Sequence record: NC_019521.1
Length of the DNA stretch: 64,000 nt
Direction: 5' to 3' (one strand)
The notes under the pieces are model-generated. The model was not told the origin of the DNA, did not search any database, and saw only the letters and a program-made list of their open reading frames with translations. The position numbers and the translations under genes were made by a program. Shown one piece after another: positions 28,664 to 59,069 of the stretch (position 1 is the stretch's first letter; every line of letters begins with the position of its first letter).

Positions 28664-29470
28664 ATGAAAACTATAAGTCAATTATACGAAGGTGTATCAA
28701 ATGAATTAGTATTTAATTTTGATCAAGACTCAGAATCTGATATCATATTATTGAATACTGGTTTGAAGAAATCTGATATGTTTGATTCAGTATTTCATTT
28801 TTCTTACGAATTTACAGATAAAGCTAGTTCATCTGACAGAACTAAGTTCTTTAACGAATTTAGATTTGGTGCTAATATAAGTAAAACTGACAGTAATAGA
28901 TTTATTTCTACAGCTATATCAAGATTAGATAAAGAAATAGATTTAAGGAAATTCGACGCTATAGTTTTACCTAGATCAAGGTCTGAAATCAATTCAAGAA
29001 TGCTAAAATTCATTACTAGAACATCAAGAATTAAACCTTTCAGTTTTGAACTAGTCAAAAAACAAACATCTGACATTAATTTCGACATAGATCGATTTAC
29101 TGACGAAGTATTGAATTCGACTGTTATGATGGGTTCGAAAGAAAGACCTAGATATACCGATAAACAAAAATCTGAAGCTTTACAAAAAATGAAAAACATT
29201 ATAGATTCTGTTAGAAAGTCTGATTATTTCAGTATAGCTGAATCTATCAAAACTAATAAACTAAAAGAATATGTTGAGGAATTCTTAGAATTTGAAAACG
29301 AAGAATCTAAAAATACTTACGAAAAATTAAAAGATAAGAACATTCTAGTAATCGATGATGTTACGACAACAGGTTCTACGATAATCGAAATAATCAAAAC
29401 TTTACAAGCTGTAAACAGATCAAATAAGATAGTTATCTTTTCGTTAATAGGTAAACCAAATCTTATGTAA
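28664..29470 (+). CDS. Type I phosphoribosyltransferase-fold protein carrying the MKTISQLYE leader
   Basis: PRPP-binding loop ILVIDDVTTTGSTI plus the N-terminal shared tag. Confidence 0.75.
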   Translation: MKTISQLYEGVSNELVFNFDQDSESDIILLNTGLKKSDMFDSVFHFSYEFTDKASSSDRTKFFNEFRFGANISKTDSNRFISTAISRLDKEIDLRKFDAIVLPRSRSEINSRMLKFITRTSRIKPFSFELVKKQTSDINFDIDRFTDEVLNSTVMMGSKERPRYTDKQKSEALQKMKNIIDSVRKSDYFSIAESIKTNKLKEYVEEFLEFENEESKNTYEKLKDKNILVIDDVTTTGSTIIEIIKTLQAVNRSNKIVIFSLIGKPNLM

Positions 29471-29476
29471 AAATAA

Positions 29477-29519
29477 AAACCCTCGGAAACTGAAACTTTC
29501 GAGGGTTTCGTAGTATAAT
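29477..29519 (+). promoter_or_regulatory. Hairpin-embedded promoter GAAACT-N16-TATAAT (repeat copy 2)
   Basis: AAACCCTCG/CGAGGGTTT arms. Confidence 0.7.
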
Positions 29520-29594
29520 TACTTTATATAAATAAAGTAATTCGATTCGTTTAGAATCTATATACTTATTAATAAATCTTTAAATTATACTTAT

Positions 29595-30020
29595 ATGTCA
29601 ACTTTAAAACAACTTTCGAACCCACTTAAATTAAAAGGTAAATCTCACAAAGCGATTTACGATATCAATTACCAAATCAATAAAGGAATCGTAACACCTA
29701 ATAATCTTTCTGATATTACAGAAGATACTAAAGAAATCAATTTCAGATCAGGTGCTGACGATGTAAGAAATGCTACAGTTTTCGAAAATGATAGAATCGT
29801 TAGTTCTTGTGATGTAGGGCGTGGTTTATATCTTACTGAAGATGGAATAGCTTATCTTGTTTCACCTTACTGGGTTTGGGATTCACTTTTACGTGATAGT
29901 ATCAGAAATCATAACTTATCAAGAACTGAAATCCTTGAAATGGTTGAAGCTAATTGTTCAGCTAAAGGTACAATTTCTGGTAAAGTTATTACAATTACTC
30001 ACATCAATACTTCAAACTAA
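29595..30020 (+). CDS. Hypothetical early protein
   Basis: 141 aa downstream of the hairpin promoter at 29492. Confidence 0.6.
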   Translation: MSTLKQLSNPLKLKGKSHKAIYDINYQINKGIVTPNNLSDITEDTKEINFRSGADDVRNATVFENDRIVSSCDVGRGLYLTEDGIAYLVSPYWVWDSLLRDSIRNHNLSRTEILEMVEANCSAKGTISGKVITITHINTSN

Positions 30021-30538
30021 TGAAAACTTTATATAGCACACTCTTAGATGTTCTTTCAGAAACAAAAATGTTCGAACATGCTATGGACCGAAAATTCGTA
30101 CTGAACAGAATATTTAACAATAGTCAAAATCTAGTTAATCATTTATTGAAAACTATATTTTTTCCAAACGATTATTCTGTAAATCATTGGGAAGATGAAG
30201 TAGTAAATGTCATTGAAAAACATGTGATTGGTTTAGTTAAATCAAAGGTATCTGCTAAACAGTACTACGAATTTTTGATAGCGAAACAATATTCAAAAGG
30301 TAAAAACTTATCGATTGATGAGATTTATCGATTATTTAGAGTACATTTAAAAACTGAATATACTGAACAGTATATGAAAGATTTCGATTCACTTAAATCG
30401 GAATATTCTAGTATCATTTTGGAGAATCTTAAAAACTTCTTTACAGAATTATCAGAACTGTTAGAAACTAAAAACACAAAAATAACAGAATCTGAACTTG
30501 TTAACTTAACTAAGGCGTTCAATTCGATCAAGGAATAA
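30020..30538 (+). CDS. DUF29-like helical protein with variant leader MKTLYSTLLDVLSE
   Basis: NLVNHLLKTIFFP...NHWEDEV resembles the DUF29 L..HLLK....P.....W pattern. Confidence 0.45.
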   Translation: MKTLYSTLLDVLSETKMFEHAMDRKFVLNRIFNNSQNLVNHLLKTIFFPNDYSVNHWEDEVVNVIEKHVIGLVKSKVSAKQYYEFLIAKQYSKGKNLSIDEIYRLFRVHLKTEYTEQYMKDFDSLKSEYSSIILENLKNFFTELSELLETKNTKITESELVNLTKAFNSIKE

Positions 30539-30543
30539 TATTT

Positions 30544-31101
30544 ATGAAAACATTGACATTATCCGACTTCTTGAAAGAAAATCATTTCGATTTAGAAGTA
30601 CATAATCCGATTCATATCACTCCATATAATCTTCTTAGAAAGAATACGAAACTAGATTTCGATGTAATAGTTTTCGGTGTACCTTTACAACGTACAGTAG
30701 TTTGGAAAGAATATCAAAAACAAGAATTGATTCTAACGCTACTGAAAGGTCAGGAAATTCCTGAAATCTATGCTATTTGTCAATGCCATTACGATAAATC
30801 AGATAAAGTATATCAGATAATTGACGGTAAGCAAAGACTTACAACTATTCTAGATTTCATGGAAAATAAGTTTCCGATTCAATTCGGTAACGATTTGTTC
30901 ATGTACGATCATTTGGATGAACATTTACAGAGACGTATTTGGAATTGTTCTTTAAGAATGTCAATTGTCTATGAATATCCTGATACTATCGTTTCAGATA
31001 TTGACAAAATCAAATGGTTCAATCTTCTTAATTTCTCAGGTACTTTACAAAGTCATCAACATGAGAAAATGCTAAAAACGTTAATTAACGAAAATCAGTA
31101 A
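30544..31101 (+). CDS. Stand-alone DUF262 (GmrSD N-terminal/ParB-like) protein
   Basis: LQRTVVW...QKQELILTLLKGQEIP and IIDGKQRLTTI motifs. Confidence 0.8.
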   Translation: MKTLTLSDFLKENHFDLEVHNPIHITPYNLLRKNTKLDFDVIVFGVPLQRTVVWKEYQKQELILTLLKGQEIPEIYAICQCHYDKSDKVYQIIDGKQRLTTILDFMENKFPIQFGNDLFMYDHLDEHLQRRIWNCSLRMSIVYEYPDTIVSDIDKIKWFNLLNFSGTLQSHQHEKMLKTLINENQ

Positions 31102-31103
31102 AT

Positions 31104-31736: not shown

Positions 31737-31739
31737 ATT

Positions 31740-36816: not shown

Positions 36817-38078
36817 TGATAAAAGAAATAATACACCCAACTTTAGAAGCTAAACAAATAATTGTAAGAACTGACAAAGATGAGGATATTGAAGTTCTTG
36901 AGAAAGTAGTTGGTAAAACTTATCCACTGATAAGAGTACTTGACAGAACTATTAATATCGATCAAATTCAGGACTTTAGATACAAAATAGGAGCTTCGTT
37001 ACTTCCAGAAATATCTTTGATTATAACTGACGAAAACAATCGTTTGCGTGAGAAATTGAAAACAAATATCGATACTATAACGGTTTATCTGAGTAATAAT
37101 ATCGATGGTTCGTTTTCAAAACAGGAATACATTCTTTCTACTGTATACAGCGATCCAGGTGATGACAATTTGTCAATGAGGGCTATTCTTTACGTACCAA
37201 ATCTTTTCAAACGTGAAATGAGAGCTTTCCAATCGAATTCTATAGATACGATAAAGGAAATATGTTCTGAAGTAGGATTGGGATTATCAAGTAATTTCAC
37301 TCCATCTGATGAACAGGTAAGATTACAAGATAATATTACTAATATCGATTTTATTCGTAATACTGCGGAATCCTCACAGTGTCTAGCAGTTCATATGTTT
37401 ATAGACCAATGGTCATATTTAAATGTTATCGATATTAAGAAAGCTCACGAAACTAATGACGTAATCGAATATACAGTTAACCCATATTCTGGAATCGATT
37501 TAGAAGAACCACAGAATCTAGTATTATCTAACAATTATCTAAAAACTGATATCGTTGGGAAAATAATGTTTTGGTCAGTAAATGATTCTTACGGAATCAA
37601 ATCTTTATCGTATGTTAGTTTATACGATATCGAAAACTTTGATTTAGTTGAACTTGATAAAACTGATACAGTACAGATAACAGCTGAATCTGAAGAACTT
37701 AGAGCAGAAAAACGTAAGTTACTTGTCAAAAGTGATAACGTTTGGGATGGATATTTTCAATCTAAGTATTATGGTAATTTCGTTAAAGATACTTTGAATC
37801 AATCAGCAGAATTAATCGTTAGAATGCAATATCCGTTACATGCTATTCATCCAGGATTATCATTACCTGTTGAAATCTTTAACACTCAGAAAAGAACGAA
37901 TTCGTATGATCAAGAAGATGAAAACTTATCTATCGAAGAAATGCCTCAAGAAACGGGTGATGAAGCTAGGAAATTAGTTAAGAACGAATTGTATTCAGGT
38001 CAGTATTATGTTCGACAAGTTGAAATGAACTATAACGAAAACATAATTGAACAAACACTTTATCTGAAACAGATTTAA
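36816..38078 (+). CDS. Baseplate hub-like protein (gp27/gpD-like)
   Basis: 420 aa coupled to the gp53-like gene. Has SIDTIKEICSEVGL, QDNITNIDFI and YSGQYYVRQVE. Confidence 0.45.
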   Translation: MIKEIIHPTLEAKQIIVRTDKDEDIEVLEKVVGKTYPLIRVLDRTINIDQIQDFRYKIGASLLPEISLIITDENNRLREKLKTNIDTITVYLSNNIDGSFSKQEYILSTVYSDPGDDNLSMRAILYVPNLFKREMRAFQSNSIDTIKEICSEVGLGLSSNFTPSDEQVRLQDNITNIDFIRNTAESSQCLAVHMFIDQWSYLNVIDIKKAHETNDVIEYTVNPYSGIDLEEPQNLVLSNNYLKTDIVGKIMFWSVNDSYGIKSLSYVSLYDIENFDLVELDKTDTVQITAESEELRAEKRKLLVKSDNVWDGYFQSKYYGNFVKDTLNQSAELIVRMQYPLHAIHPGLSLPVEIFNTQKRTNSYDQEDENLSIEEMPQETGDEARKLVKNELYSGQYYVRQVEMNYNENIIEQTLYLKQI

Positions 38079-38084
38079 TACATA
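38077..38084 (+). promoter_or_regulatory. Late promoter box AATACATA
   Basis: Heads the operon with three tagged genes and gp4. Confidence 0.65.
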
Positions 38085-38102
38085 TTCTTATAAAACAAAG
38101 CT

Positions 38103-38247: not shown

Positions 38248-38631
38248 ATGAAAACATTAGTTCAACTTTTCGAATCTAAAGATTATTCTAAGAACGATTT
38301 AGCTCTTATCGCTAAAGACACTATCGAAAGAATGTCTACAAAACGTTTAACTGATATCGAAGCTAAAATAAATTCGAATAACTCTTTATCTATTTCAGCT
38401 AAATCGGATGGTAAAGCTTTTAGTTTTAGTCTAAGATTTGTAGTTAAAACTAGAACGGTTAGTGATAAAGTTTCAGACTATGAGATTATCGTTATTACAG
38501 AAGGTTCGAATATCAATAGTACTAATTCGTTAAAACAATATAAGAAGTTACATGAAATGATATTCCTGAAATCTACTTTCAAGAATGAAATCACTTCAAC
38601 TGTTATCAAATCACTTCAAGGGAAATTCTAA
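38248..38631 (+). CDS. Putative capsid-internal protein (leader MKTLVQLFES)
   Basis: Shared N-terminal tag, in a late operon. Confidence 0.65.
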   Translation: MKTLVQLFESKDYSKNDLALIAKDTIERMSTKRLTDIEAKINSNNSLSISAKSDGKAFSFSLRFVVKTRTVSDKVSDYEIIVITEGSNINSTNSLKQYKKLHEMIFLKSTFKNEITSTVIKSLQGKF

Positions 38632-39029
38632 TGAAAACACTTTCGAAATTATACGAAGCTTTCGTAGAAAAAGAAATCGATACTAATTCTAATACGATAC
38701 ATAGAATAATAGCTGACGCTTTCAGAAGATGTGTATCAGTTGGTGAAATCAAGAGACTTAGAAATCTTGAAAGTTTAGAAATAGAAACTAACGGTAACGA
38801 ACATAAAGGTTTACTAGAATTCGAAGCTACAGTAAATCATGTAGAAAGAAAATTCAAAGCTCTTTATTCAGTAATCGATTCTAACGAAAGGATAAAAATA
38901 TCTATTATCATAAACCTTATAAACGAAGAAGTTTCTAGCATAAACGAAGAATTAGTAATCGAAGGAATTGACTTACAGAATCAAGTTATTCTGTTAGTTG
39001 AAAAATTATTACGTAATATAGAAATATAA
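38631..39029 (+). CDS. Putative capsid-internal protein (leader MKTLSKLYEA)
   Basis: Shared N-terminal tag. Confidence 0.65.
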   Translation: MKTLSKLYEAFVEKEIDTNSNTIHRIIADAFRRCVSVGEIKRLRNLESLEIETNGNEHKGLLEFEATVNHVERKFKALYSVIDSNERIKISIIINLINEEVSSINEELVIEGIDLQNQVILLVEKLLRNIEI

Positions 39030-39030: not shown

Positions 39031-39696
39031 ATGAAAACAATATCAAAACTATACGAATCGAGACTTAACGAAAACTTGAATACAGAGTTATCATACTTTG
39101 CTAACGTAACTAAAGTTTCTAAAACATTTTTAGAAACTTTACCAAAAGTACAAAAAATAATAGATTCACATTATCCATCAAGTAAGTCTAAACTAATACT
39201 CGAACCATCTTTCTATACTGATTCGGTGAAAGTTTCTATAGGTAATGACAAATGGGGTTATGGATATTCATATGCTAGCAGTTATACAAAAACCCCTGAT
39301 CAGAATATGTTAGCTTTATGTTCTGAATTGTTTGATCTTAATGCTTTCGATTCTGTTGCTATAAACAATGGTACATTGAATTTATCGATCAGTTTCAATG
39401 ATTCAGCATCGTTACGAAAGAAAACTTTAGATAGTATTAAGAAATCAAAACTTGACGATTCTAAATTGAATTTTATAACACCTAGAAATCGTGATAATGT
39501 TTATCTTTATATTGACAATGTCTGGGTAAGTGCTCATATAATGGAAGAGGGTGGTTCTAAAATAAAATATGTTTTAGATAAACCTGACCCTGTAACTAAA
39601 GAAAGAGTTTTCTATGCAGACATGAAATCGTTTGTTTTTTCTGACCCATTAAAGGTTAAGAATTATGATAATGATTTAATTTTCTGGAAACCTTAA
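39031..39696 (+). CDS. Putative capsid-internal protein (leader MKTISKLYESRLNE)
   Basis: Shared N-terminal tag with a second LNE. Confidence 0.65.
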   Translation: MKTISKLYESRLNENLNTELSYFANVTKVSKTFLETLPKVQKIIDSHYPSSKSKLILEPSFYTDSVKVSIGNDKWGYGYSYASSYTKTPDQNMLALCSELFDLNAFDSVAINNGTLNLSISFNDSASLRKKTLDSIKKSKLDDSKLNFITPRNRDNVYLYIDNVWVSAHIMEEGGSKIKYVLDKPDPVTKERVFYADMKSFVFSDPLKVKNYDNDLIFWKP

Positions 39697-39706: not shown

Positions 39707-40192
39707 ATGTCAACTCATATAAAGGACTCTCTTAAACCTAGACTAAATTCTAAGTTTAAGCAAGGGTACTTTGAACAAGCTAGAACAACTGTAAACAAGT
39801 ATATAGGAAAACGTCCAATCATATATCGTAGTTCTTACGAATATGATGCCTTCGTTTGGGCTGATACTTCACCTAATGTCGTACATTGGACAACTGAACC
39901 ATTTCCTATAGAATATACTGACATGACTACAGGTAAGAAACATAAATACTGGATAGACTTGGTTGTAAAATTCAAAGACGGAAGTACAGCTCTTATCGAA
40001 ATCAAACCATTAGCTCAAGTACCTAGATCATTAAACGAGGTAAAACTCGATCCTGTAAAACGTAAGAACTTCCAGAAATGGGAAGCTACTAAAGAATTCT
40101 GTAAACGTAATTATGGTTATAAGTTTATCATACTTACAGAAAAATCTTTATTCGCTTTAACAGGATTGTCAAAATATTCAGCACATAGATAA
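39707..40192 (+). CDS. gp4: Head completion nuclease (T4 gp4 / TnsA-like)
   Basis: FKQGYF, IYRSSYE, WADTSPNVVHW..EPFPIEY, YWID, LIEIKP. Confidence 0.85.
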   Translation: MSTHIKDSLKPRLNSKFKQGYFEQARTTVNKYIGKRPIIYRSSYEYDAFVWADTSPNVVHWTTEPFPIEYTDMTTGKKHKYWIDLVVKFKDGSTALIEIKPLAQVPRSLNEVKLDPVKRKNFQKWEATKEFCKRNYGYKFIILTEKSLFALTGLSKYSAHR

Positions 40193-40712: not shown

Positions 40713-40758
40713 ACGAAACCCTCGGAAACTGAAACTTTCGAGGGTTTCGTAGTATAAT
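40713..40758 (+). promoter_or_regulatory. Hairpin-embedded promoter GAAACT-N16-TATAAT (repeat copy 3)
   Basis: Perfect 12-bp arms ACGAAACCCTCG/CGAGGGTTTCGT. Confidence 0.7.
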
Positions 40759-44050: not shown

Positions 44051-44512
44051 ATGAAATCACTTACAAACTTATACGAAAATAAGCTTAACGAAGCTTCAGG
44101 AACTTTTAGCTCTTTGGAATCTAATATGAATTCTTCTATAGATTCTGTAAAGAATCATATTGATTCGGAATTAAAGGAGCTTTTAGCTAAACAATCTAAA
44201 ATAAAGGATGCTAAATCTAAGACTGCTAAAGCTATTAAAGTAATTGAAAATGTTCTTCCAGAATTTACAGAATTACATGCAACTTATAAGATCATGACAT
44301 TCAATGACAGTATTTGCATAGAATTTACTATTCCTAGTGAAATAATGAATGACAAAACTTCGAATATAAAGAAAGATGTTGTTTATTTCAATAATTTCAT
44401 TAAAGCTAATAAATCGGAACTGGATAAAACTTTTAGTTTTGCTGGTGTAACTAGATATAATTCAGAATTCTCCGGAAATAGCTATAGTGATTTAATACTA
44501 GTTCTTAAATAA
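44051..44512 (+). CDS. Putative capsid-internal protein (leader MKSLTNLYENKLNE)
   Basis: Shared tag, first gene after late box 44024. Confidence 0.65.
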   Translation: MKSLTNLYENKLNEASGTFSSLESNMNSSIDSVKNHIDSELKELLAKQSKIKDAKSKTAKAIKVIENVLPEFTELHATYKIMTFNDSICIEFTIPSEIMNDKTSNIKKDVVYFNNFIKANKSELDKTFSFAGVTRYNSEFSGNSYSDLILVLK

Positions 44513-44520: not shown

Positions 44521-44796
44521 ATGAAATCACTTACGAAATTATACGAATCTAAACTTAACGAAAGTGAGGAAATCGACAAAGTAAAAATGAAACAGGCTTT
44601 GGTTACTTTTCAGAAGTCTAACGATCTAATAAAACTTGAAAAAGACTTACTAGCACTTAATCCATATAAAAACGGTATACAATACAATGCTTATATTGAC
44701 TGGATTAATGACAATATCAAATGGTATAAGAACGGTGATACTTATGTATTTTCTTTAACAAGCTCCGGATCGGTTCTTAATTCGTTAGACGATTAA
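44521..44796 (+). CDS. Putative capsid-internal protein (leader MKSLTKLYESKLNE)
   Basis: Shared tag. Confidence 0.65.
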   Translation: MKSLTKLYESKLNESEEIDKVKMKQALVTFQKSNDLIKLEKDLLALNPYKNGIQYNAYIDWINDNIKWYKNGDTYVFSLTSSGSVLNSLDD

Positions 44797-44799: not shown

Positions 44800-45426
44800 A
44801 TGAAAACTCTTACTTCCCTACTATTCGAATCTTACAATTCTGACATAAGGAAACTTGAGTTAAAGCTTCAGTCTTTTGGTTATACTGTTCGACATGATAC
44901 AAGTAGACCAAAAGGCTTTGCTTTAGAAATTAGATTACCTAAGGATCAGTTATATGTACCTGAGGATTTAGAAATACTTTCTAAGAACTTGGAAGCTTAT
45001 CCTAATCTTTTAATGATCGATGCTAAAGTCGGGGAAGATAAGAATTACGTAGATTTCATCTTTCCAGTAACAGAAAGATTCGTTGATAAAGTTTATCATG
45101 TAACTTCTAAGAAATGGATAGAATCGATAACTGAAAAAGGTTTATTATGTTCTAGACCTACTGATGCTTCTGATAACATTAAGAAACATGAATCAAAAGA
45201 ATCTTTCAGAGATAGAAAATACAAAGCTGTTTTCGTAATATCGAATTTAGAAGACGCTAAGAAAGTTTCTAAGATGTTCGACTTCGAAGAACCTCAACTT
45301 ATCGAATTAGATACAAAGAATCTTAAATTTTTCGAAGATCCAATGATGCCTGAAGAAATGGATTCATTAGTTCATTTCGATGACATAGAACCAAAAAGAA
45401 TAATTAACATAACTGACATTAAATAA
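44800..45426 (+). CDS. Tagged protein with ADP-ribosyltransferase/Tpt1-like domain (leader MKTLTSLLFES)
   Basis: VYHVTSKKWIESITEKGLL, VFVISNLEDA, LIELDT, FEDP, DIEPKRI follow the ART-fold layout. Confidence 0.55.
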   Translation: MKTLTSLLFESYNSDIRKLELKLQSFGYTVRHDTSRPKGFALEIRLPKDQLYVPEDLEILSKNLEAYPNLLMIDAKVGEDKNYVDFIFPVTERFVDKVYHVTSKKWIESITEKGLLCSRPTDASDNIKKHESKESFRDRKYKAVFVISNLEDAKKVSKMFDFEEPQLIELDTKNLKFFEDPMMPEEMDSLVHFDDIEPKRIINITDIK

Positions 45427-45428: not shown

Positions 45429-45806
45429 ATGAAAACAATATCAAAATTATACGAAGCTAGTTCGGATTTCCAAATGATAGAATTCGAATCGATTAAAGCT
45501 ATAGAATTAGCTATAGCTAACTATTCAGCCTCGGTTAAGGGCTTACAACAAGAAGTAACAAGCATTAAGAATCATTTATCAAAAATACTTGGAAACAAAG
45601 TATCAGACATTAAAGATCTGAATGCTTCTTTAACTGCTGAAAAAGGTATTACGTACATAGAGGTACAACTTCAAGCTGATAAAGTTGAAAAATTTGGAAT
45701 GGAGGAAAGTAAAGCCTTTTCAAAAGTTTTACAAGCTAAAGGCATTACTAAACATAAAACCCAATTTGTCGGAACTAGTTCAATGTACATTACATTATAT
45801 TTCTAA
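45429..45806 (+). CDS. Putative capsid-internal protein (leader MKTISKLYEA)
   Basis: Shared tag. Confidence 0.65.
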   Translation: MKTISKLYEASSDFQMIEFESIKAIELAIANYSASVKGLQQEVTSIKNHLSKILGNKVSDIKDLNASLTAEKGITYIEVQLQADKVEKFGMEESKAFSKVLQAKGITKHKTQFVGTSSMYITLYF

Positions 45807-45808: not shown

Positions 45809-46180
45809 ATGAAAACTCTATCAAAACTATTCGAAGATCAAATCTTTAACGTTTCTTCAGTTTCTCAGTACTATCGAGAAAATATAGATTTACTGTTACC
45901 AGCTAAAGAAGTTCTTGACGAAAAGGATATTCAAATAGCTAAAGATAGAATTCTGAAAGAAAAAGAAGTTTTACCTAAGGGTCATAAGTATCTTATGATT
46001 AATGAAGCTCAGACATTAATGTTTATGGTTCTAGAACTTCAAGGTTCTAGATATCATGCAGTTCTTACAAGTGATACTGAGAGTACTGTATTTCAGACAT
46101 TAATAAACTGGGAACATGTTGAAGAATATGTCAAAGCTTTAGGATTAGATTTCGATTATTTCAAAGAATCGAAACTGTAA
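45809..46180 (+). CDS. Putative capsid-internal protein (leader MKTLSKLFED)
   Basis: Shared tag. Confidence 0.65.
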   Translation: MKTLSKLFEDQIFNVSSVSQYYRENIDLLLPAKEVLDEKDIQIAKDRILKEKEVLPKGHKYLMINEAQTLMFMVLELQGSRYHAVLTSDTESTVFQTLINWEHVEEYVKALGLDFDYFKESKL

Positions 46181-46193: not shown

Positions 46194-46231
46194 AACAAAA
46201 ACCCGTTAGATCGATCTAACGGGTTTTTGTT
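46194..46231. terminator. 38-bp perfect palindrome / bidirectional terminator
   Basis: AACAAAAACCCGTTAGATC|GATCTAACGGGTTTTTGTT. Confidence 0.75.
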
Positions 46232-46295: not shown

Positions 46296-48050
46296 ATGTT
46301 AGGTTACAATAGAAACGCAGGTAGACCCAATTCTGGGAATCTATCAAAGAAATTCAGTAAATTAGGACCGATTATCAAATCGATTGGTAACTTCGGTATC
46401 GTCATAAATAAGAAAGTTCTTGACAAAAAGACTGCTATACCTGAAGACCCAAGATTAGAAGGTGACATTTATTCGATTCTTGATACGATTGGAACTCGTT
46501 CAATGAATCAAACTTCATATCCTCAATATAATCAAAACGATCAAGTACAAAGACAAGCTAGACGTTGGCATTTAATTACAATGTCTAAACATCCAGAACT
46601 TGAAGATATTATTGAAACGTTAACTGATGAAGCTATTGTATATGATAAGAATGCTACTTACTGCTGTTCTGCTATTCTAAATACTTTGATGTTAGACGAA
46701 AAGATAATTAGTTCTAAAGATTCTAAAGACCTTGAAGAATTAGTTACAGAAAAGTTCCCAGCTTTATATAGAATGTTAGGTCTTTATAAATCTGGTGCTA
46801 AATCTTTGATGCAAGAATGGTTAGTTGAAGGTAAGAAAGCTTGGGAGATTGTATACGATTCATTAGATAATCCTAAATCGATTATAGGTTTAGTTCCGAT
46901 AGACCCATTATCATTAATTGAACATTGGGATGAAGATGGTAACAGATGGTGGATTCAGGAACCAAATCTTACTCAACAATCTAGTGCTATGGGTGTTACT
47001 AGAGCTATGGGTGGTCAAAGAACATTACATGACTCACAGGTAATATATTGGGATTGGGACCCAACAGGATTTAAGTTTTCTTATCTTGAAAGACTTTTAA
47101 GAACGTTTAATGTTTACCGAGCTATCGAAAGAATGAAAGTTAACTGGTGGGTTATGAACTCTCAGTTTAGAACTATGATCGTTATTCCAACTCATGGTAA
47201 ATCTAGACAACGCGCTGCTGAGGTATTAGCTGCAGCAATGCAAAGATATCGAGATCATGTTGAATTCTCTGATGAAGATGGAACGGTTAAAGTAAATGGT
47301 TCAGCGAACATTCCAGCGAATAAGGAATATTGGTTAGCTGATACTTCGTCTGGAAAACCTGAAGTTTCTACAGTAGGGGGTGACGGATATGACTTGTCAA
47401 GTGCTGATACTTCATGGTCTAAACGAAATCTGTTAGAACTTTCTAAAGTACCTTTGGATAGATTCGACCCTAGTTCTTCAGAATCATGGAATCTTGACCC
47501 AACATCTTCAAGACGTCAAGAATTGAAATTCGCTAAGTTTGTCCAAACGTTAAGAACTTCAATGTCTGAGATAATGCTAAAACCTCTGATTATTCAAATA
47601 TGTTTAGATCGCCCTAATCTGACAAATAATTACGAATTACTTGATGCGATTACTATAGATTTCTTATCTGAAAACATCTTTACTCAAAAGATCGAAATGG
47701 AAATCATGAAAGAACGTACTGAATTCATTGGTGAAATGATGGACAAGCTTAAACGTGTTGACGCTGACGGTAACGAAAAACCTTTCTTCTCTTTGAAATT
47801 CTTGATGGACAAATACATGATGTTAACTCCTGAAGAACTTGAACAAAATGCGAAAGCTCTTAAAGAAGAGGAAAAGGAAATGGAAGAATTCAGTAGAAAA
47901 CAGAATACAATTTCAGCTGAAATGGAAGCTGAGAAAGCTGAATATACAAAAGAATTCGAAGAAGATGATTCTAAATCTTTATACGAATCTATAAAGGCTA
48001 AAAGAATCAAACGGAAAACAACAAAAGACATTACAAAATACAGAATATAA
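46296..48050 (+). CDS. gp20: Portal protein (T4 gp20-like)
   Basis: HPELEDIIETLTDEAIV, WLVEGK, SYLERLLRTFN, KEYWL, EVSTVGG, QELKFAKFVQTLR. Late box at 46264. Confidence 0.9.
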   Translation: MLGYNRNAGRPNSGNLSKKFSKLGPIIKSIGNFGIVINKKVLDKKTAIPEDPRLEGDIYSILDTIGTRSMNQTSYPQYNQNDQVQRQARRWHLITMSKHPELEDIIETLTDEAIVYDKNATYCCSAILNTLMLDEKIISSKDSKDLEELVTEKFPALYRMLGLYKSGAKSLMQEWLVEGKKAWEIVYDSLDNPKSIIGLVPIDPLSLIEHWDEDGNRWWIQEPNLTQQSSAMGVTRAMGGQRTLHDSQVIYWDWDPTGFKFSYLERLLRTFNVYRAIERMKVNWWVMNSQFRTMIVIPTHGKSRQRAAEVLAAAMQRYRDHVEFSDEDGTVKVNGSANIPANKEYWLADTSSGKPEVSTVGGDGYDLSSADTSWSKRNLLELSKVPLDRFDPSSSESWNLDPTSSRRQELKFAKFVQTLRTSMSEIMLKPLIIQICLDRPNLTNNYELLDAITIDFLSENIFTQKIEMEIMKERTEFIGEMMDKLKRVDADGNEKPFFSLKFLMDKYMMLTPEELEQNAKALKEEEKEMEEFSRKQNTISAEMEAEKAEYTKEFEEDDSKSLYESIKAKRIKRKTTKDITKYRI

Positions 48051-48718: not shown

Positions 48719-48916
48719 ATGAAAACATTAACACAATTATATGAATCTGTAATCGATGATTCGGATAAAGAATTTTTGAAATCGGAATTGAAACATATCG
48801 ATAATCAAATAGATAAGCTTATGAAGTTATCAAAGATATCTGATAAACAACAAGCTTATTGGGATAAGCTAGAGCTTGATAAAAATGAAATTATAGAACT
48901 ATTGAAAACAAAATGA
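48719..48916 (+). CDS. Putative capsid-internal protein (leader MKTLTQLYES)
   Basis: Shared tag, 65 aa, helical hairpin-like. Confidence 0.65.
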   Translation: MKTLTQLYESVIDDSDKEFLKSELKHIDNQIDKLMKLSKISDKQQAYWDKLELDKNEIIELLKTK

Positions 48917-49383
48917 AAACGTTAGTTCAACTATTCGAAGACTTATCACTCGATGTATCTAAAGCGATACGTCGAGAACTTGATACAAATTTCAAAGGGT
49001 TTCGTAAACATCAGAATCGTCATGATATCGAAGCTTTAATTGGTGATGCTATGAGAAACTCAGCTTTACCTTTTATAAGACATGCAGCTGAATACGTAAC
49101 TCCTGATAAATTCAAATCTGGTAAGCATATTAATTCTGGATATTGTGTTCAATTCGCTGAGTATATTTTAGATCATGTTCATTCTCGTAACGTTAAGATG
49201 ATGGGTGATGTCGATCATCATGTAATGTTGAAAGACAACGTAACAGGTCTTTATTATGACGCTGAGCATCCAGATGGTATAACTTTAGAAGATTTCCGTA
49301 ATACTACATGGATGAAAAATCCTGACAAAGTTGTACAGTTCTTAAGAAACAAAGAAGTTAAGGAAATTGATTACATGCAATAA
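48913..49383 (+). CDS. Tagged protein with possible Cys-His-Asp (papain/transglutaminase-like) triad (leader MKTLVQLFED)
   Basis: INSGYCVQFA...HHVML...YYDAEHPDG. Confidence 0.45.
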   Translation: MKTLVQLFEDLSLDVSKAIRRELDTNFKGFRKHQNRHDIEALIGDAMRNSALPFIRHAAEYVTPDKFKSGKHINSGYCVQFAEYILDHVHSRNVKMMGDVDHHVMLKDNVTGLYYDAEHPDGITLEDFRNTTWMKNPDKVVQFLRNKEVKEIDYMQ

Positions 49384-49407: not shown

Positions 49408-50148
49408 ATGAAAAATATATCCATAATATCAAGTATTGACAAACGTTCAATGCTTTTCGAAGCTGTAAGTGACGGATTAATACCAGTACCTGATGGTATG
49501 ATGCGTGTTTCTGGAGTAATAGCTAAGATGGACGTTATGAATAATAACGGACGTTTTTATACTAAAGAAAACTATACAAAACATATTGATTCTATTCAGG
49601 ATAAAATCGCTACCGGTCTTTATGGAGAAATGGAACATCCTGATAGCTTTAATATCAATTATAATAACGTTTCTCATAAAGTTGAAAAACTTTGGTATGA
49701 TCATGCTACCGATGAAGTCAAAGGTATATTTCTACTTTTAGATAACGAAAAAGGTAAAACTGCTCAAGCTATTGTTAAATCTGGTGGTACTCTTAGATGT
49801 TCTACTAGATGTGCTGGTGATGTAGCGAAAGGTAATGAAGCTCGTATAAGTAAATTCTATACAGTCGATTTAGTCGGTACTCCTGGATTCGATGAAGCTA
49901 AATTATTCTTGATGGAATCTTTAGATTTTACATCTAAATCAAATAGTTCAGATATTAAACTTTTGAATGAAGATGATAACAGTATTGTATATGTTTCAGA
50001 ACTTAAACAAATGCTTTTAGAATCTAAGAAATATGTAACTAACGATTCAGCTTTATTAGAAGCTTTAAATGAAAGAACTAATCTAGTTTCTTCGAAGGAA
50101 TCTAAGAAGCTTTATGAATCTATTAAATCGAAAATACTTAAACGATAA
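49408..50148 (+). CDS. gp21: Prohead protease (T4 gp21-like)
   Basis: NNNGRFY, YGEMEHPD, VSHKV, GKTAQAIV..G..L.CSTR, DLVGTPGF. Confidence 0.9.
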   Translation: MKNISIISSIDKRSMLFEAVSDGLIPVPDGMMRVSGVIAKMDVMNNNGRFYTKENYTKHIDSIQDKIATGLYGEMEHPDSFNINYNNVSHKVEKLWYDHATDEVKGIFLLLDNEKGKTAQAIVKSGGTLRCSTRCAGDVAKGNEARISKFYTVDLVGTPGFDEAKLFLMESLDFTSKSNSSDIKLLNEDDNSIVYVSELKQMLLESKKYVTNDSALLEALNERTNLVSSKESKKLYESIKSKILKR

Positions 50149-50150: not shown

Positions 50151-50984
50151 ATGAAAACATTAACACAATTATATGAAGCTATAGTTATATCTAAAGATTA
50201 TCCTAAATTTGATTCGTCTAATAAAGATATCGAAAAATATCTTCTAAATATTGCAAACGAATTAAAGAAATCTGAAGGTTTTAACAAATATAGAGGGGTT
50301 TACGATTTTAAAAGCAGATATAACTACGGACAAGGAATAATAGATCATACTGTAATACTCGAATGGTCTGCACCATTATCAGAATGTTTTAAATCTTTAG
50401 GTGTATCTAAATCTGAAGCTATATTGATTTCAGATTTAGGTAAGAATGCTGAAAAGCTAACAACTATCAAATTTAAATTACAGGTACATATTCGTGAAAA
50501 AATATCATCTGATCAAACTATCGATAAATTTGAAAACTATTACAGTGGTACTTTAGACGCTACTATTTATAATCATAATTTCAGTAGAATAGTTTCGTAT
50601 ATGTCTGGATATTATTCTGGTGGTTCTGATGATAAGTATACTTACGATAGAACACAAGAAAGCTTTGATAAGTCTGATAGAATTTTCGATTTAATAAATT
50701 TCGTAACTAGTAATATCAACGCTTATAATAAAGAATACAATCCAGTTTTGATATCATCTAACAGTTCTATTCTTAGTAATGAAGCTTCTTCAGTTTATTC
50801 TAGAATATCAAAAAATAAAACTGACAATTTATACGACTTTACGGATTTTATTAAGAAACATGGTGAAGCTAAACTTTTAAATCTATTAAAGAAATCTTCA
50901 ACGTTTAAAGCTTTCTTAGATAAGGATCATTATAAAGATGGTATCTTATCGAAAACTTCTATCTGGTCAGAAACATACGATTAA
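50151..50984 (+). CDS. Putative capsid-internal protein (leader MKTLTQLYEA)
   Basis: Shared tag, directly after the protease gene. Confidence 0.65.
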   Translation: MKTLTQLYEAIVISKDYPKFDSSNKDIEKYLLNIANELKKSEGFNKYRGVYDFKSRYNYGQGIIDHTVILEWSAPLSECFKSLGVSKSEAILISDLGKNAEKLTTIKFKLQVHIREKISSDQTIDKFENYYSGTLDATIYNHNFSRIVSYMSGYYSGGSDDKYTYDRTQESFDKSDRIFDLINFVTSNINAYNKEYNPVLISSNSSILSNEASSVYSRISKNKTDNLYDFTDFIKKHGEAKLLNLLKKSSTFKAFLDKDHYKDGILSKTSIWSETYD

Positions 50985-50993: not shown

Positions 50994-51305
50994 ATGAAAA
51001 CGATAAATCAATTATACGAAGCTAAGCTTAATGAAGCTTATGGTACAGAACATCTCGAAGATCAAAATGCTGAATTAGGTGCATTAGTTAAAGACTTAAA
51101 GGATGTAAAAGTTGGGAAAACTTACTGCATTGTAGATTTAGGTTTAGAGGAATGGAATTCTGGATATAAACTTAAAGCGATAAAAGGTAATATGTACATC
51201 TTTGACGATTTACTAGGTTCTCCTTTAGATAAAGAAGTTTTCGAATTTACTAGAGGTGACATTTTAGAATTAATATATGACAAAGCTATAGCTTTCGAAA
51301 AATAA
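50994..51305 (+). CDS. Putative capsid-internal protein (leader MKTINQLYEAKLNE)
   Basis: Shared tag. Confidence 0.65.
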   Translation: MKTINQLYEAKLNEAYGTEHLEDQNAELGALVKDLKDVKVGKTYCIVDLGLEEWNSGYKLKAIKGNMYIFDDLLGSPLDKEVFEFTRGDILELIYDKAIAFEK

Positions 51306-51312: not shown

Positions 51313-51735
51313 ATGAAAACAATATCAAAATTATACGAAGCTAAATTAAATGAAGCTTCAAACTATGATCCATACGAATGGGGTGAAACTGTAATGAAGG
51401 CTGTTAAATCGTTAGCTTCATCTTTGAAACTTAAAGATATTAAAATCCATGAAGCTCATTCTGATGATGGCGAAGGTTACGGTCATGGTATAATCGATTT
51501 TAAGAAAGATGGTGTACCATATTATATCGATTATCATATAACTCTTGAATTACATCATGGACTAGAATTAGGTGATTTAGAAATCCAATTAGGTGTTTAT
51601 GAAGATTCTGATGAACCATATGCACCAAATGATGACGTTGATAAAACTTTCAAGAAAGTTTCTGGTCAAGACGAACCAAAGGTTATTTCGAAAATGGTAA
51701 CAGATTTCTTGAAATCTACTAAAGTTTTGAAATAA
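51313..51735 (+). CDS. Putative capsid-internal protein (leader MKTISKLYEAKLNE)
   Basis: Shared tag, acidic body. Confidence 0.65.
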   Translation: MKTISKLYEAKLNEASNYDPYEWGETVMKAVKSLASSLKLKDIKIHEAHSDDGEGYGHGIIDFKKDGVPYYIDYHITLELHHGLELGDLEIQLGVYEDSDEPYAPNDDVDKTFKKVSGQDEPKVISKMVTDFLKSTKVLK

Positions 51736-51796: not shown

Positions 51797-52824
51797 ATGT
51801 CTAAAAATAATCTAACAGTTGCTCAAAAAGTAAATGCGCTTGTTGAGTCACATATCAAAACAAAATTGATTCCAGTTTTACAAGAGAATCAAAAACAAAT
51901 GTTTGCGATGATCGATCAACATCTTATGGAGAACTTCGGTCCTGCTGTAGTTGCTTTCATTAAAGGTAAAGGTCAAGCTCTTAACGAATCTCAAAACGAA
52001 GAGATTACAAATTCTTTCCGTAATTTCCTTTTGGAAAATGCTGAAGAGGATGTAGCTGAAGAAGTTAAAGAACTTGAAGATAAACTTGAAGACAAGAAAG
52101 AAGAACTTGAAGATTTGAAACTTGAAGAATCTAAACTTGTTAAGAAAGCTAAAGCTTTAAACGAAGCTAAGGATGAAGCTCACGAAGATGAGGAATTATC
52201 TGAAGAAGAAGAAGAAGAAATCATTGATGAAATCGAACTTCAAGAATCTTTGAATACTAAATCACTTACTAAAGTTCGTCGTAAAATGAAACTTGTTGAA
52301 AGTGAATTGGAAGAAATCGCTGACGAATTACAAGATTTAGGTGCTATGGCTACTGAAGATACTGGAATTCCAGCTGATGAAGTTGAATTATCTGAAGAAG
52401 AATTGGAAGAGCTTGAAGGTGAGGAACTTTATGAAGCTTTGAAAACTCGTGTTGCTAAGAAAAGTAAACGTAATGGTAGTCTTTTAGAATCTATCAAAAA
52501 CGATATCGCTAAAGCAAAACGTCTTGACGCAAAAAAAAAGTAAACAAGCTTAACGAAAACGTTAACGAAGATACTAACGTTCTAAAAAATATTCCTGATG
52601 AATTTAAAGCTTTATATGAATCTTTAAGTCCTGAAGCGAAAGATGTTTTAAACGAAAATGCTAGAAATGCTAACCTTGATACGTTATCAGGAGTTCGCAA
52701 CTTCTTTCAGAATACAAACTTCAAAAGCTTACAACAACGTAATGCTTTGAATAAGTTAAATGAAAGTCAAGAAACTAAGCAATCTGGATTAGCGTTTGTT
52801 ACTAACTTACTTAAACCATTTTAA
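51797..52824 (+). CDS. Prohead scaffold (gp22-like); 248 aa to the stop at 52543, about 342 aa with a -1 shift at A9 (52531-52539)
   Basis: Acidic coiled coil with many L-x-E motifs, between protease and capsid. The -1 frame stays open to TAA 52822-52824 and encodes KLNEN, LYES, VLNEN, KLNES. Confidence 0.75.
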
Positions 52825-52914: not shown

Positions 52915-54672
52915 ATGTCTTTTAAATATACTAGGATTAATCCTGCACAAGCCCAGAAAAAATGGGGTGCTAAATTAAACGAATCTTTCGAGTCTATCAA
53001 AACTCTTCCAGGTTTTGCTAACAAGATGAATATGATTTCGAAACTTGCTGCTATTAAGGAACTTAATGACGGTGGAGTTAACAAGGGAGAACGTGCTCTT
53101 ATGGAGAACTATCAAATCTCTGGAACTGGTGATATTCTTGGAATGGGTCCATCTACATGGCCTTCTGATCCAGGTACTGCTCCAGGAAATGAAGAAGGTG
53201 CTTGGACTAAACCAACCTACAAAAAAGGTTCTGGTGATGTTCCTTCAATGATCTTCGGATTAGCGATGAACGTTGCTGCTTACACTGTAGGTTTCGATAT
53301 CGTTCACACTATTCCAGTTGATACTCCGACAGCAGCTTTCCAATTCTTGGATTCTATTTACGCTGGTGGTAAACTTAACGAAGCTGGAAATCCTCCTTCT
53401 TACATGAAAGTAAGTTCAGTTAAACTTCGTGCTGGATTCGATTACAGTACTTTGGTTAAAGGTGGTCATGTATTCTTCAAAACTAAAGGAGATGATACTG
53501 CAGTTCATGGTATTTTCATGGGTAAATCGTTCTTCGATGGTGGTTTAATGATCAAACTTGAATCTACTGGTACTATCGCTACTAACGTTTATACTAAAAC
53601 TGATGCTATCTCTGTAGCTGATGTATTTACTGACGCTGGTGTTGAAGTAATTCCTGGTTCTTCTGCTACTGCAGTTGATGGTACTGCTTTAGATATCGAA
53701 GTTGCACAAGCTGAATACGTTGAATCTTTCCGTGAACATGTACAAGGTTTCACTAACAGTGACCAAATTACTCCACGTTCTATGGATAGAGCAACAGGTG
53801 AGCAAGGAACTCGTTCAGTATTGAACTTACGTTTATGGTCAACTTCTTTGGAAATGCGTACAGTTGAAGTACTTGCTGATATCACTAAAACTCAGTTGAA
53901 AGACTTAAGTGCATATGGTATCGATGGTGTTGCTCAGTTGTACAAAGCTTCTCAAAACGAATTGATTCAGTCAATTAACGATGAGATCATAACTGAATTC
54001 ACTCGTTTAGGTGTTACTAACCACGCTCAATTATTCGCAGCTCAAAACTTGAACTTGAACTTATTTATCGCTCCTGCTGGAACAGCTAATAAGCCTTTGA
54101 CTCAGTTTAACTACGGAGAATTCAAAGACGTTCAAGGTGTTGATCGTGCAGCTGAATTTGGTAATATCATAAACGCTGAGAATAACTCTGCAGCAGAAAA
54201 TACTTACACTCGTCAACGTAGAATTTACTCTCGTTTATTAGCCGCTTCAGCTATTATCGGTACAATTTCTCGTTACGGTTCTGGTGATGTTGCGGTAGTT
54301 GGTCCACAAACAGCAGTTGCGTTACAAGATTCTAAATCTTTCACTGCAGTTCCAATGGAAAACAACTTAGGTTCAACAGCTGATTTACATTACATTGGTA
54401 ACGTAAATGGTATCCGTATCTATGTTAACCCTAAATGGTCATGGGATGATAAACGTATATCTGTTGGACGTCAAGGTCAAGACGATCAACCAGGTTTGAA
54501 ATTCTTTGCTTACGATTTAGCTAGCTCTGTAGAGGTTATCGATTCTTCTACTTACGCTCCTAAAATCTGTGTTACTTCACGTTTCGCAGTTCAAGCATGT
54601 GGTTTCCATCCTGAGGCTTCTTACTTAACTTTCGTTGTCAACTCCGATTTCGGTGGTGATACTTGGGTATAA
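52915..54672 (+). CDS. gp23: Major capsid protein (T4 gp23-like)
   Basis: 585 aa with VAAYTVGFDIV, TPTAAFQFL, QSINDEII, NGIRIYVNP, SRFAV. Late box at 52866 and a strong terminator after it. Confidence 0.9.
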   Translation: MSFKYTRINPAQAQKKWGAKLNESFESIKTLPGFANKMNMISKLAAIKELNDGGVNKGERALMENYQISGTGDILGMGPSTWPSDPGTAPGNEEGAWTKPTYKKGSGDVPSMIFGLAMNVAAYTVGFDIVHTIPVDTPTAAFQFLDSIYAGGKLNEAGNPPSYMKVSSVKLRAGFDYSTLVKGGHVFFKTKGDDTAVHGIFMGKSFFDGGLMIKLESTGTIATNVYTKTDAISVADVFTDAGVEVIPGSSATAVDGTALDIEVAQAEYVESFREHVQGFTNSDQITPRSMDRATGEQGTRSVLNLRLWSTSLEMRTVEVLADITKTQLKDLSAYGIDGVAQLYKASQNELIQSINDEIITEFTRLGVTNHAQLFAAQNLNLNLFIAPAGTANKPLTQFNYGEFKDVQGVDRAAEFGNIINAENNSAAENTYTRQRRIYSRLLAASAIIGTISRYGSGDVAVVGPQTAVALQDSKSFTAVPMENNLGSTADLHYIGNVNGIRIYVNPKWSWDDKRISVGRQGQDDQPGLKFFAYDLASSVEVIDSSTYAPKICVTSRFAVQACGFHPEASYLTFVVNSDFGGDTWV

Positions 54673-54692
54673 CGTAAGTTAACCTTATAACG

Positions 54693-54726
54693 AAAACCCT
54701 GTTACTATTAAGTAACAGGGTTTTTT
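54693..54726 (+). terminator. Intrinsic terminator after the major capsid gene
   Basis: 14-bp stem AAAACCCTGTTACT, loop ATTA, T-run. Confidence 0.85.
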
Positions 54727-56946: not shown

Positions 56947-56954
56947 CGTTTTTA

Positions 56955-56962: not shown

Positions 56963-56986
56963 TTCCTAATAACTTAGGAATTAACT

Positions 56987-58267: not shown

Positions 58268-58268
58268 T

Positions 58269-58276
58269 AATACATA
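58269..58276 (+). promoter_or_regulatory. Late promoter box AATACATA
   Basis: Leader nearly identical to that at 44024. Confidence 0.65.
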
Positions 58277-58294
58277 TTCTTAAATATCTTAAAA

Positions 58295-58537
58295 ATGAAA
58301 ACGTTAACACAATTATACGAAGCTGAAGAAATTCCAGCAAAAAGAAAATTCTTTGTAAGTCAAAGAGGTGTTGCTGACTTTAAGAAAGATTTGAAGATGA
58401 ACGGTATGAAATATGAAGAACTTAAAGGTAACAATTTCATACTTGATAATTCAAATCCTGGTAAGGTAAACATGGCTGTAAAAATGGTAAGGGAACGTGT
58501 AGGTTCTCAAAATATCAAAGAAAAATTCGATTTTTAA
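58295..58537 (+). CDS. Putative capsid-internal protein (leader MKTLTQLYEA)
   Basis: Shared tag, with its own late box at 58269. Confidence 0.65.
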   Translation: MKTLTQLYEAEEIPAKRKFFVSQRGVADFKKDLKMNGMKYEELKGNNFILDNSNPGKVNMAVKMVRERVGSQNIKEKFDF

Positions 58538-58539
58538 TC

Positions 58540-58881
58540 ATGCCAGTCTGGTTAAAGGAACAACCCAATAACTTACAGATACTTCATTCAGAACTATTAG
58601 ACAACTACGTTCAGTCATGGATTGAACGTAGTTTTCAAATCATTCCACCACATTCTATGGATACGAATTACATTACATGGAAATGTTTCGGATGTTCTAA
58701 ACCATTATCTGTAAAATTCGATTCAGTAAATCATAAAGATTTCTGTTGTAAGAATTGTAAACATTTTGCAGTAGGTAAACCTAATGCTATAATGTTACGT
58801 TTTATGTGGTCGTTTAATATGCACATACAATCAAGAATCATAAACAATTCAGCTAATTTGTCTGAATTACTAGAACAATAA
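58540..58881 (+). CDS. Zinc-ribbon protein
   Basis: CFGC...CKNC. Confidence 0.6.
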   Translation: MPVWLKEQPNNLQILHSELLDNYVQSWIERSFQIIPPHSMDTNYITWKCFGCSKPLSVKFDSVNHKDFCCKNCKHFAVGKPNAIMLRFMWSFNMHIQSRIINNSANLSELLEQ

Positions 58882-58883
58882 AA

Positions 58884-59069
58884 ATGAAAACATTAAAGTC
58901 AATGTTCGAGTCAATCATCAAGGATGATATGTCTCCGATATATGATAAAGCTAAAGACAAATCATATAACAAGAAAACAAATGACAATTCTGAAATGTCA
59001 CCAACTTATGACAAAGTTAAAGCTGGTAAGAACAAATCAGACGATTACGAAATGTCACCAACTAAATAA
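58884..59069 (+). CDS. Tagged repeat micro-protein (leader MKTLKSMFES)
   Basis: (D/E)MSP(I/T)(YD)K repeated three times. Confidence 0.55.
   Translation: MKTLKSMFESIIKDDMSPIYDKAKDKSYNKKTNDNSEMSPTYDKVKAGKNKSDDYEMSPTK

Follow-up and report, generated by a model that had tools for sequence, protein, structure and literature searches.

Tagged genes and their setting

The DNA analysed here, called the window, is a stretch of 64,000 nucleotides that corresponds to positions 62001-126000 of the genome of Sphingomonas phage PAU (NC_019521.1, 219,372 bp) and holds the genes annotated as gp90 to gp172. The segment 38000-46000 is identical to PAU by megablast. Despite the name of the phage, its host strain belongs to Sphingobacterium, a genus of the Bacteroidetes (PMC3738902), and the 32% G+C of the window fits such a host. 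Sixteen genes of the window encode proteins that begin with nearly the same nine residues, M-K-(T/S)-(L/I)-x-x-(L/M)-(Y/F)-E, referred to below as the tag. A sequence-only reading of this DNA had taken this N-terminus for a capsid-targeting signal on an arsenal of injected proteins, and the nature of the tag is the subject of this paper. The deposited annotation names gp147 as portal, gp151 as capsid maturation protease, gp152 as 'scaffolding' and gp156 as major capsid protein. Ten tagged genes (gp142-146, gp149-150 and gp152-154) flank or interleave with the portal, protease and scaffold genes, as had been claimed. The genes and signals are collected in Table 1.

Table 1. Tagged genes, head genes and expression signals (positions in the window unless a contig is named).
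Feature	Position	Strand	Description
gp91	2615..3715	+	L-N-E at residues 15-17; adjoins tail sheath gene; membership doubtful
gp111	26586..27842	+	L-Y-E at residues 11-13; membership doubtful
31-base stem-loop and promoter-like repeat	28583..28613, 29485-29515, 40724-40754	+	3 copies, 0 expected
gp114	28664..29470	+	Tag MKTISQLYE (residues 1-9), then phosphoribosyltransferase-fold domain
gp116, gp117	30020..31101	+	M-K-T-L start; L-x-E at residues 12-14 and 10-12, respectively; membership doubtful
WATACATAT box	38077..38085	+	Precedes gp130-gp133
gp131	38248..38631	+	Tagged; 127 residues; no known family; clearly basic
gp132	38631..39029	+	Tagged; 132 residues; no known family
gp133	39031..39696	+	Tagged, second L-N-E; 221 residues; no homologue in 5.8 billion proteins
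WATACATAT box, further copies	44024, 46264, 49387, 51754, 52866, 58269	+	Precede other tagged strings, portal, protease, gp155 and capsid genes
gp142	44051..44512	+	Tagged, second L-N-E; GenBank 'internal capsid protein'; heads five-gene all-tagged string; box at 44024
gp143	44521..44796	+	Tagged, second L-N-E; 91 residues
gp144	44800..45426	+	10-residue version of tag (L-L-F-E); 208 residues
gp145	45429..45806	+	Tagged; 125 residues
gp146	45809..46180	+	Tagged; 123 residues; closes all-tagged string; hairpin downstream
Terminator-like hairpin	46194..46231		Ends gp142-146 string
gp147, portal	46296..48050	+	Pfam Portal_T4, E = 4e-88; L-Y-E at 562-564; L-Y-E-S-I-K 20 residues before C-terminus
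gp149	48719..48916	+	Tagged; 65 residues; between portal and protease
gp150	48913..49383	+	Tagged; 156 residues; between portal and protease
gp151, prohead protease	49408..50148	+	Pfam Peptidase_S77 (T4 gp21 family), E = 4e-10, 39.9 bits, cut-off 27
gp152	50151..50984	+	Tagged; 277 residues; GenBank 'scaffolding'; finds only itself among 1.84 billion representative proteins
gp153	50994..51305	+	Tagged, second L-N-E; 103 residues; acidic
gp154	51313..51735	+	Tagged, second L-N-E; 140 residues; GenBank 'internal capsid protein'; homologue search found only itself
gp155	51797..52543	+	26% acidic; 16 [LI]-x-E sites in 248 residues; C-terminal L-L-E-S-I-K
gp156, major capsid protein	52915..54672	+	Pfam Gp23; propeptide sites L-N-E23, I-K-E49, L-M-E64; K-L-N-E-S at residues 20-24
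Second terminator-like hairpin	54692-54725		Downstream of capsid gene
gp164	58295..58537	+	Tagged; 80 residues; basic (net +7); box at 58269
gp166	58884..59069	+	M-F-E version of tag; 61 residues
Tagged genes of phage MA9V-2	L009 15850-16656, 19640-19888; L011 40608-41072 (-); L014 30401-30700, 31850-32449		Chryseobacterium phage

Recurrence and composition of the tag

The 16 open reading frames (ORFs) said to have a common N-terminus are all open from an ATG on the + strand and all bear the tag. A pattern search of every ATG ORF in the six frames of the window returns exactly these 16 and no others, 20 shuffles of the window contain none, and the chance expectation from amino-acid composition is 0.0001 tagged genes per 83 genes in the window and 0.0004 genome-wide. 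Clustering of ORF N-termini with no preset pattern recovers 15 of the 16, missing gp144 (one extra residue), and the only other N-terminal clusters in the window arise from internal repeats of gp103. A piecewise scan of the rest of the genome adds gp16, gp199, gp220 and the variant gp270, giving 20 tagged genes among 295 protein genes. A literature search found no paper describing the PAU tag.

Across the 16 proteins of the window, position 1 is always M, position 2 K and position 9 E (16 each). Position 3 is T (14) or S (2), position 4 L (11) or I (5), position 7 L (15) or M (1) and position 8 Y (11) or F (5), while the residues between vary more: S (6), T (6), V (2), N (1) or K (1) at position 5, and Q (7), K (6), S (2) or N (1) at position 6. 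The L/M-(Y/F)-E triplet falls at residues 7-9 in 15 proteins and at residues 8-10 in gp144. The residue that follows the tag (position 10, P1') is A or S in 12 of the 16 (A 6, S 6, D 2, G 1, N 1). In five proteins (gp133, gp142, gp143, gp153 and gp154) a second triplet, L-N-E, stands at residues 12-14. All window proteins together contain 35 [LM]-[YF]-E tripeptides, 16 of which lie within the first 10 residues of the tagged genes. The end of the tag coincides with L/I-x-E, the cleavage motif of the gp21 family: T4 gp21 cleaves after L/I-x-E (PMC9026906).

The conserved residues are written in different codons. Thr3 is encoded by ACA (8), ACT (3) or ACG (3), Leu4 by TTA (6), CTT (4) or CTA (1), Leu7 by TTA (10), CTA (4) or CTT (1), and Tyr8 by TAC (9) or TAT (2). 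This synonymous variation shows that it is the peptide that is under selection. Together with the lack of a common block in the DNA upstream of the 16 genes, it rules out a DNA repeat or recombination box. A signal peptide is likewise ruled out, the tag being too short and not hydrophobic.

It is very improbable that the shared start is an expression signal unrelated to the capsid, acting through the mRNA or the nascent chain (initiation without Shine-Dalgarno pairing, or N-terminal stability). Such a signal would agree with the ATG AAA of all 16 genes and their A-rich first codons, with the absence of an obvious ribosome-binding motif upstream, and with a host among the Bacteroidetes, Sphingobacterium (PMC3738902). 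However, it is the peptide that is conserved despite synonymous variation, most strongly at residues 7-9, distant from the start codon, and it coincides with a protease cleavage motif. Moreover, the highly expressed capsid, portal and sheath genes have no tag, nor do the bacterial homologues of gp114, and an Rfam scan of the window gave no match.

Looser variants of the tag had also been reported in gp116, gp117, gp91 and gp111. These genes exist, but as variants they are weak, having in common only M-K and a later L-x-E.

Protein sequences behind the tag

Past the tag, the proteins were said to share nothing obvious, and this description is borne out. BLASTP comparison of all 20 tagged PAU proteins after residue 15 gives no pair better than E = 0.5, and the highest hhalign probability among 190 pairs of bodies is 4.3%. 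Pfam and PHROG scans of the 16 window proteins leave 15 without a match, and gp114 has weak phosphoribosyltransferase matches, all below cut-offs. No tagged protein has a Pfam or PHROG match to the T4 IPI, IPII, IPIII or Alt families, a result of profile scans and not of direct comparison with the T4 sequences. Three cargo proteins, gp133, gp152 and gp154, were searched against large protein sets and have no homologue outside PAU. A structure model of gp152 from its single sequence is unusable (predicted local distance difference test score, pLDDT, 42). Cleavage at the tag would leave the window proteins with 52-268 residues, in which the density of internal [LI]-x-E is about that of the background.

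These comparisons bear on the origin of the set. Descent of all members from one internal-protein gene by tandem duplication, with bodies diverged beyond recognition and only the propeptide constrained, would account for the arrays gp131-133, gp142-146, gp149-150 and gp152-154, for the similar small sizes, and for the identical 27-base tag DNA of gp145 and gp154 and of gp149 and gp152. Against this stand the 190 pairs without detectable similarity and the separate bacterial origin of the gp114 body, and a single paralogous family is therefore considered unlikely. Both origins can coexist, and the function of the tag is the same either way.

A tag in front of a bacterial-type domain

gp114 is the only tagged protein for which relatives were found, about 70 homologues, the searches with gp133, gp152 and gp154 having given none. 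Its phosphoribosyl pyrophosphate-binding loop, I-L-V-I-D-D-V-T-T-T-G-S-T, aligns with HGPRT (PDB match), and D231, T235, G237 and T239 are invariant among 25 homologues. An AlphaFold model built on these 25 homologues has a pLDDT of 73, with residues 1-17 disordered. The top 24 Foldseek hits of the model are all phosphoribosyltransferase-fold proteins, at TM-scores of only 0.3-0.5.

The junction between tag and domain is precise. In 49 of the 70 homologues the protein has no tag and starts with M-G-[VI] exactly where gp114 continues past E9, and in eight more the M-G-[VI] start lies just inside a probably over-extended ORF. The sole tag-less homologue whose context was read (P0013) is on a Bacteroidales chromosome and adjoins GMP synthase. 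In gp114 and nine phage or metagenome homologues, an extension ending in hydrophobic-x-E abuts this glycine. A cut after E9 would thus leave a first residue equal to that of the bacterial protein without its initiator methionine. Of all the sequence evidence for the tag being a removable add-on, this junction is the strongest, and the body of gp114 demonstrably comes, by its homologues, from a bacterial gene family of separate origin.

Head module and cleavage sites

The portal, protease and capsid protein of PAU belong to T4-type families (Table 1). For gp151, Pfam also gives a sub-threshold S80 match, and a PDB sequence search picks up the T4 protease structure 5jbl weakly, the remaining matches being at chance level and to unrelated proteins. 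His77, His90 and Ser132 of gp151 are invariant across four relatives. The protease has cleavage-type sites of its own, L-F-E at 16-18, L-N-E at 186-188 and 220-222, and L-Y-E at 235-237, and ends close to an L-Y-E-S-I-K. Tag-like motifs had been noted in head proteins, and they are indeed present in the capsid protein, the protease, the portal and gp155 (16 sites).

N-terminal sequencing by Hua et al. gave a mature PAU capsid protein of 520 of 585 residues (PMC5646251), which places its start at or one residue past L-M-E64. This N-terminus is the sole experimental anchor for protease specificity in PAU. The K-L-N-E extension of the PAU tags repeats the K-L-N-E-S of the capsid propeptide. In the whole genome, L-(Y/L)-E-S-I-K is confined to three proteins, the portal, the protease and gp155. 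It lies close to the C-terminus in all three, with a basic tail of 9-20 residues behind it, and resembles a further signal for cleavage or targeting, here at the C-terminal end.

The density of [LI]-x-E in gp155 is 6.5 per 100 residues, four times the window average and second in the window only to that of gp108. With its acidity and this density, gp155 fits a scaffold resembling T4 gp22 better than does gp152, and it is the likeliest main scaffold. gp108 (23848-24390), with 12 sites in 180 residues, lies among replication genes.

The GenBank note 'internal capsid protein' is attached to five proteins of the whole genome, of which four are tagged (gp142 and gp154 in the window, gp199 and gp270) and one, gp70, is not (P = 7e-5; the basis of the notes is undocumented). 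gp70 (PAU genome 46515-47051, outside the window) has Q-L-N-E at about residues 55-58 and may carry a longer propeptide.

Expression signals

The claim that most tagged genes lie under late boxes holds in part. The T4-style eight-base late-promoter box is not enriched in the window (9 found, 15 expected), but a different box, WATACATAT, derived from the window's own intergenic regions, heads strings that contain 15 of the 16 tagged genes. It has 16 copies, all on the + strand, compared with 4.9 expected over both strands, a count reached in 0 of 100 shuffles, and we infer that it is a late promoter. The box heads gp130-133, gp142-146 and gp164-166, stands immediately before only two tagged genes, gp142 and gp164, and also precedes tail genes. 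The five tagged genes gp142-146 lie between a WATACATAT box and a strong hairpin.

A second strand-specific box, CGTAGTAYWAT, has 6 sites (e.g. 28607 and 54757) and precedes gp114, gp115, gp120, gp136, gp157 and gp161. The first two copies of the 31-base repeat bracket the single gene gp114, one upstream and one just downstream. The repeats around gp114 resemble the cassettes of promoter and stem-loop by which genes are shuffled in T4-type phages.

Tag dialects in related phages

The search for tags in relatives succeeded in Chryseobacterium phage MA9V-2 and in PAU-like contigs, and failed in Tenacibaculum phage PTm1. Five genes of MA9V-2 begin with M-(K/R)-(T/N)-F-x-x-(F/I)-(I/V)-N-E, and F-I-N-E-A is present again in the capsid propeptide of the same phage. 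One of the five, encoding 82 residues, lies between portal and protease, the same place as gp149. The PAU-like contigs, from sewage and other metagenomes, hold the closest gp114 homologues and have other genes in common with PAU, at 26-46% identity; on each of them, two to four genes bear 10-residue tags of its own kind. Tags of the form M-K-S/T-L-x-x-H/S/C-I/L-x-E are found on unrelated genes of three contigs (L020 at 8327 and 10001; L021 at 3434 and 6644; L023 at 192 and 1058). An IMG/VR scan with the PAU protease returned only PAU itself. The proteases of pT24, PTm1 and MA9V-2 are fused to a long C-terminal extension (527-1207 residues).

Probable capsid targeting and possible fates of the tagged proteins

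The family of gp151, the L/I-x-E end of the tag, the capsid N-terminus, the GenBank notes and the gp114 junction are independent, indirect lines that speak for that part of the sequence-only reading which proposed a T4-style signal: the nine-residue N-terminus is probably a capsid-targeting propeptide of the T4 type that is removed by the prohead protease. The other part of that reading, an injected set of anti-defence or takeover effectors, gains no support from these analyses. By analogy with T4, we infer docking, cleavage at the tag sites, residence in the virion and injection. The tagged proteins would be made along with the head proteins, and the tag, through its conserved hydrophobic residues 4 and 7, would dock them onto a scaffolding core formed on the portal, in which gp155 would be the likely main scaffold and gp152, gp149 and gp150 further parts. 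Once the gp23-type shell had closed round this core, the S77 protease gp151 would cut after the Glu of L-(Y/F)-E at residue 9 and, where present, after that of L-N-E at residue 14, while also trimming the capsid propeptide and fragmenting the scaffold. The freed mature proteins would stay with the DNA for delivery at the next infection or, if they are parts of the core, be degraded and expelled.

Several observations weigh against this interpretation. L-x-E is a motif of low information, found 1.6 times per 100 residues. The tagged set is not basic, unlike the T4 internal proteins: net charges run from -10 to +7, and in the window only gp131 and gp164 are clearly basic. If the GenBank notes derive from mass spectrometry, 16 of the 20 tagged proteins went unreported while the untagged gp70 was reported. 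DNA is packed more densely in PAU than in T=7 phages and there is no inner body (PMC5646251), which would limit the room for cargo. gp114 stands behind the box class of the DNA polymerase and thymidylate kinase genes, not behind the head-gene box, so that it may be early and its timing may mismatch head assembly. PTm1 has the same protease family and was expected to carry tags similar to the site in its own capsid propeptide, but its genome contains no N-terminal tag family, and within 20 kb of the protease none is present in pT24 or in three huge uncultured phages. The tag system is thus not an obligatory partner of the protease.

A different fate of the proteins is also conceivable. The tag may work as proposed while the majority of its carriers belong to the prohead core as assembly parts, serving size determination or the vertex and inner structures, which are cut up and expelled or kept as structure and are not effectors. 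In T4, the core genes 67 and 68 lie between the portal and protease genes. The places of these two genes are taken in PAU by gp149 (65 residues) and gp150 (156 residues), which by position are probably prohead-core proteins (for the T4 core list see PMC9026906); gp152, by its annotation as scaffolding, and perhaps gp153 and gp154 may be core parts as well. The retention of a tagged gene between portal and protease in MA9V-2 is consistent with this, as are the acidic to neutral, scaffold-like character of the tagged proteins, the complex core that a T=25 shell plausibly needs, and the inner structures below the vertices of PAU capsids, 'to be discussed in a future manuscript' (PMC5646251). However, the tagged proteins have internal [LI]-x-E only at about background density, compared with 6.5 per 100 residues in gp155, and gp114, with its enzyme fold and bacterial origin, is an unlikely scaffold. 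In addition, the gp142-146 string and the scattered gp16, gp199, gp220 and gp270 resemble accessory cassettes, and the absence of homologues of gp133, gp152 and gp154 outside PAU fits fast-evolving accessory genes better than essential structure. A set made up mostly of core parts is thus possible but not favoured. Closer in character to cargo than to core are the enzyme-like gp114, the genes of the gp142-146 cassette and the members scattered over the genome.

Within the preferred reading of the tag as a T4-type propeptide, a far-reaching extension can be formulated, and it is doubtful. In PAU and its uncultured relatives, the tag would be a programmable address code, by which any gene, even one captured from a host, becomes cargo on acquiring 9-10 residues, with dialects that co-evolve with scaffold, protease and capsid propeptide. 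About twenty pre-made proteins would then be delivered with the DNA, the largest one-tag injected set of any phage, the majority of them being novel factors for counter-defence or takeover, of a kind that suits a phage whose cytosine is modified.

The idea of diverse internal proteins with a common targeting sequence is not new; what is new here is the scale and the phage lineage. PAU stands out by its 9-residue tag, by a second site that is frequent, by the recurrence of the site at the C-terminal end of portal, protease and scaffold, and by cargo that includes an enzyme captured from bacteria. Provided that they are packaged, the tagged proteins would form the richest natural catalogue of capsid cargo under one tag, twenty proteins of which nineteen are without a recognised fold or function, and this from a Bacteroidetes phage far from T4. 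The gp114 domain with and without the tag, and dialects that change with the capsid propeptide, would offer handles on what a T4-type targeting sequence binds and how specifically, and the mature domains make a defined list of candidates among which new counter-defence proteins of phages may be sought. Should the tagged proteins all belong to the core, a useful annotation of the PAU head module would still result, with the likely identity of the scaffold corrected to gp155.

Other features of the window

gp103 (15211-20784) has 1857 residues with more than 40 tandem repeats of 24-25 residues (M-F-x-x-C-x-x-F-N-Q...). The repeats resemble surface repeats of the leucine-rich-repeat type, and gp103 may be among the tail fibres of PAU that have been described as mop-like. 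Two genes, gp105 (21441-22904) and gp110 (25329-26543), encode the family B DNA polymerase, with a dUTPase gene and three others between them; split polymerases are also annotated in MA9V-2 and PTm1. gp134 (39707-40192), annotated as head completion protein, matches the N-terminal domain of TnsA-like endonucleases (Pfam E = 8e-16).

Comparison with known systems

The closest parallel is T4. The diversity of the T-even internal proteins, with only the capsid-targeting sequence in common, is already the textbook view (PMC3012670, PMC9026906). The T4 targeting sequence has about 10 residues; targeting requires residues 4 and 7, and processing requires the residues at its end (PMC9026906). As in PAU, a short N-terminal propeptide ending in L/I-x-E is the sole common part of IPI, IPII, IPIII and Alt (PMC9026906, PMC3012670). 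The two phages are also alike in the Pfam family of the protease, the T4-type portal and capsid protein, the conserved hydrophobic residues at positions 4 and 7 and a capsid propeptide of about 65 residues. However, PAU has 20 tagged genes compared with about four in T4, an approximately five-fold expansion, and its tag has nine residues rather than the ten found in T4 and in the relatives of PAU. In many PAU members a second cleavage site follows five residues after the first, the cargo lacks a basic character, and one cargo protein is an enzyme fold captured from bacteria. The site recurs at the C-terminal end of the PAU portal; the portal of T4 is unprocessed (PMC5694885). Packaging and injection are proven in T4 and proposed in PAU. 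The family searches with PAU proteins returned no T4 internal-protein family, and the likeness is thus one of mechanism and not a demonstrated homology between tags or between cargo proteins.

Ejection and inner-body proteins of the giant phages phiKZ, 201phi2-1 and SPN3US likewise lie inside the head and are cut after the Glu of a three-residue motif by an S80 protease related to gp21 (PMC5694885). Some of their paralogues have conserved N-termini and their complement of internal proteins is large (PMC5694885). In contrast to PAU, their propeptides mostly exceed 100 residues and do not form a uniform short tag. At the position of the L of PAU, their motif carries a small residue, and PAU showed no inner body (PMC5646251).

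In phage P1, an N-terminal signal of DarB sends this anti-restriction protein, and also a heterologous reporter, into the capsid for delivery (PMC9024508), which is similar to what is proposed for PAU. The Dar system differs in that it has no consensus signal, loads its proteins stepwise in dependence on other Dar proteins and belongs to a different head module. Outside the phages, the cargo-loading peptides of encapsulins are short conserved peptides that bring unrelated enzymes to the inside of an HK97-fold shell, as the tag would in PAU, but they usually stand at the C-terminus, no protease removes them and they serve a shell with neither DNA nor delivery.

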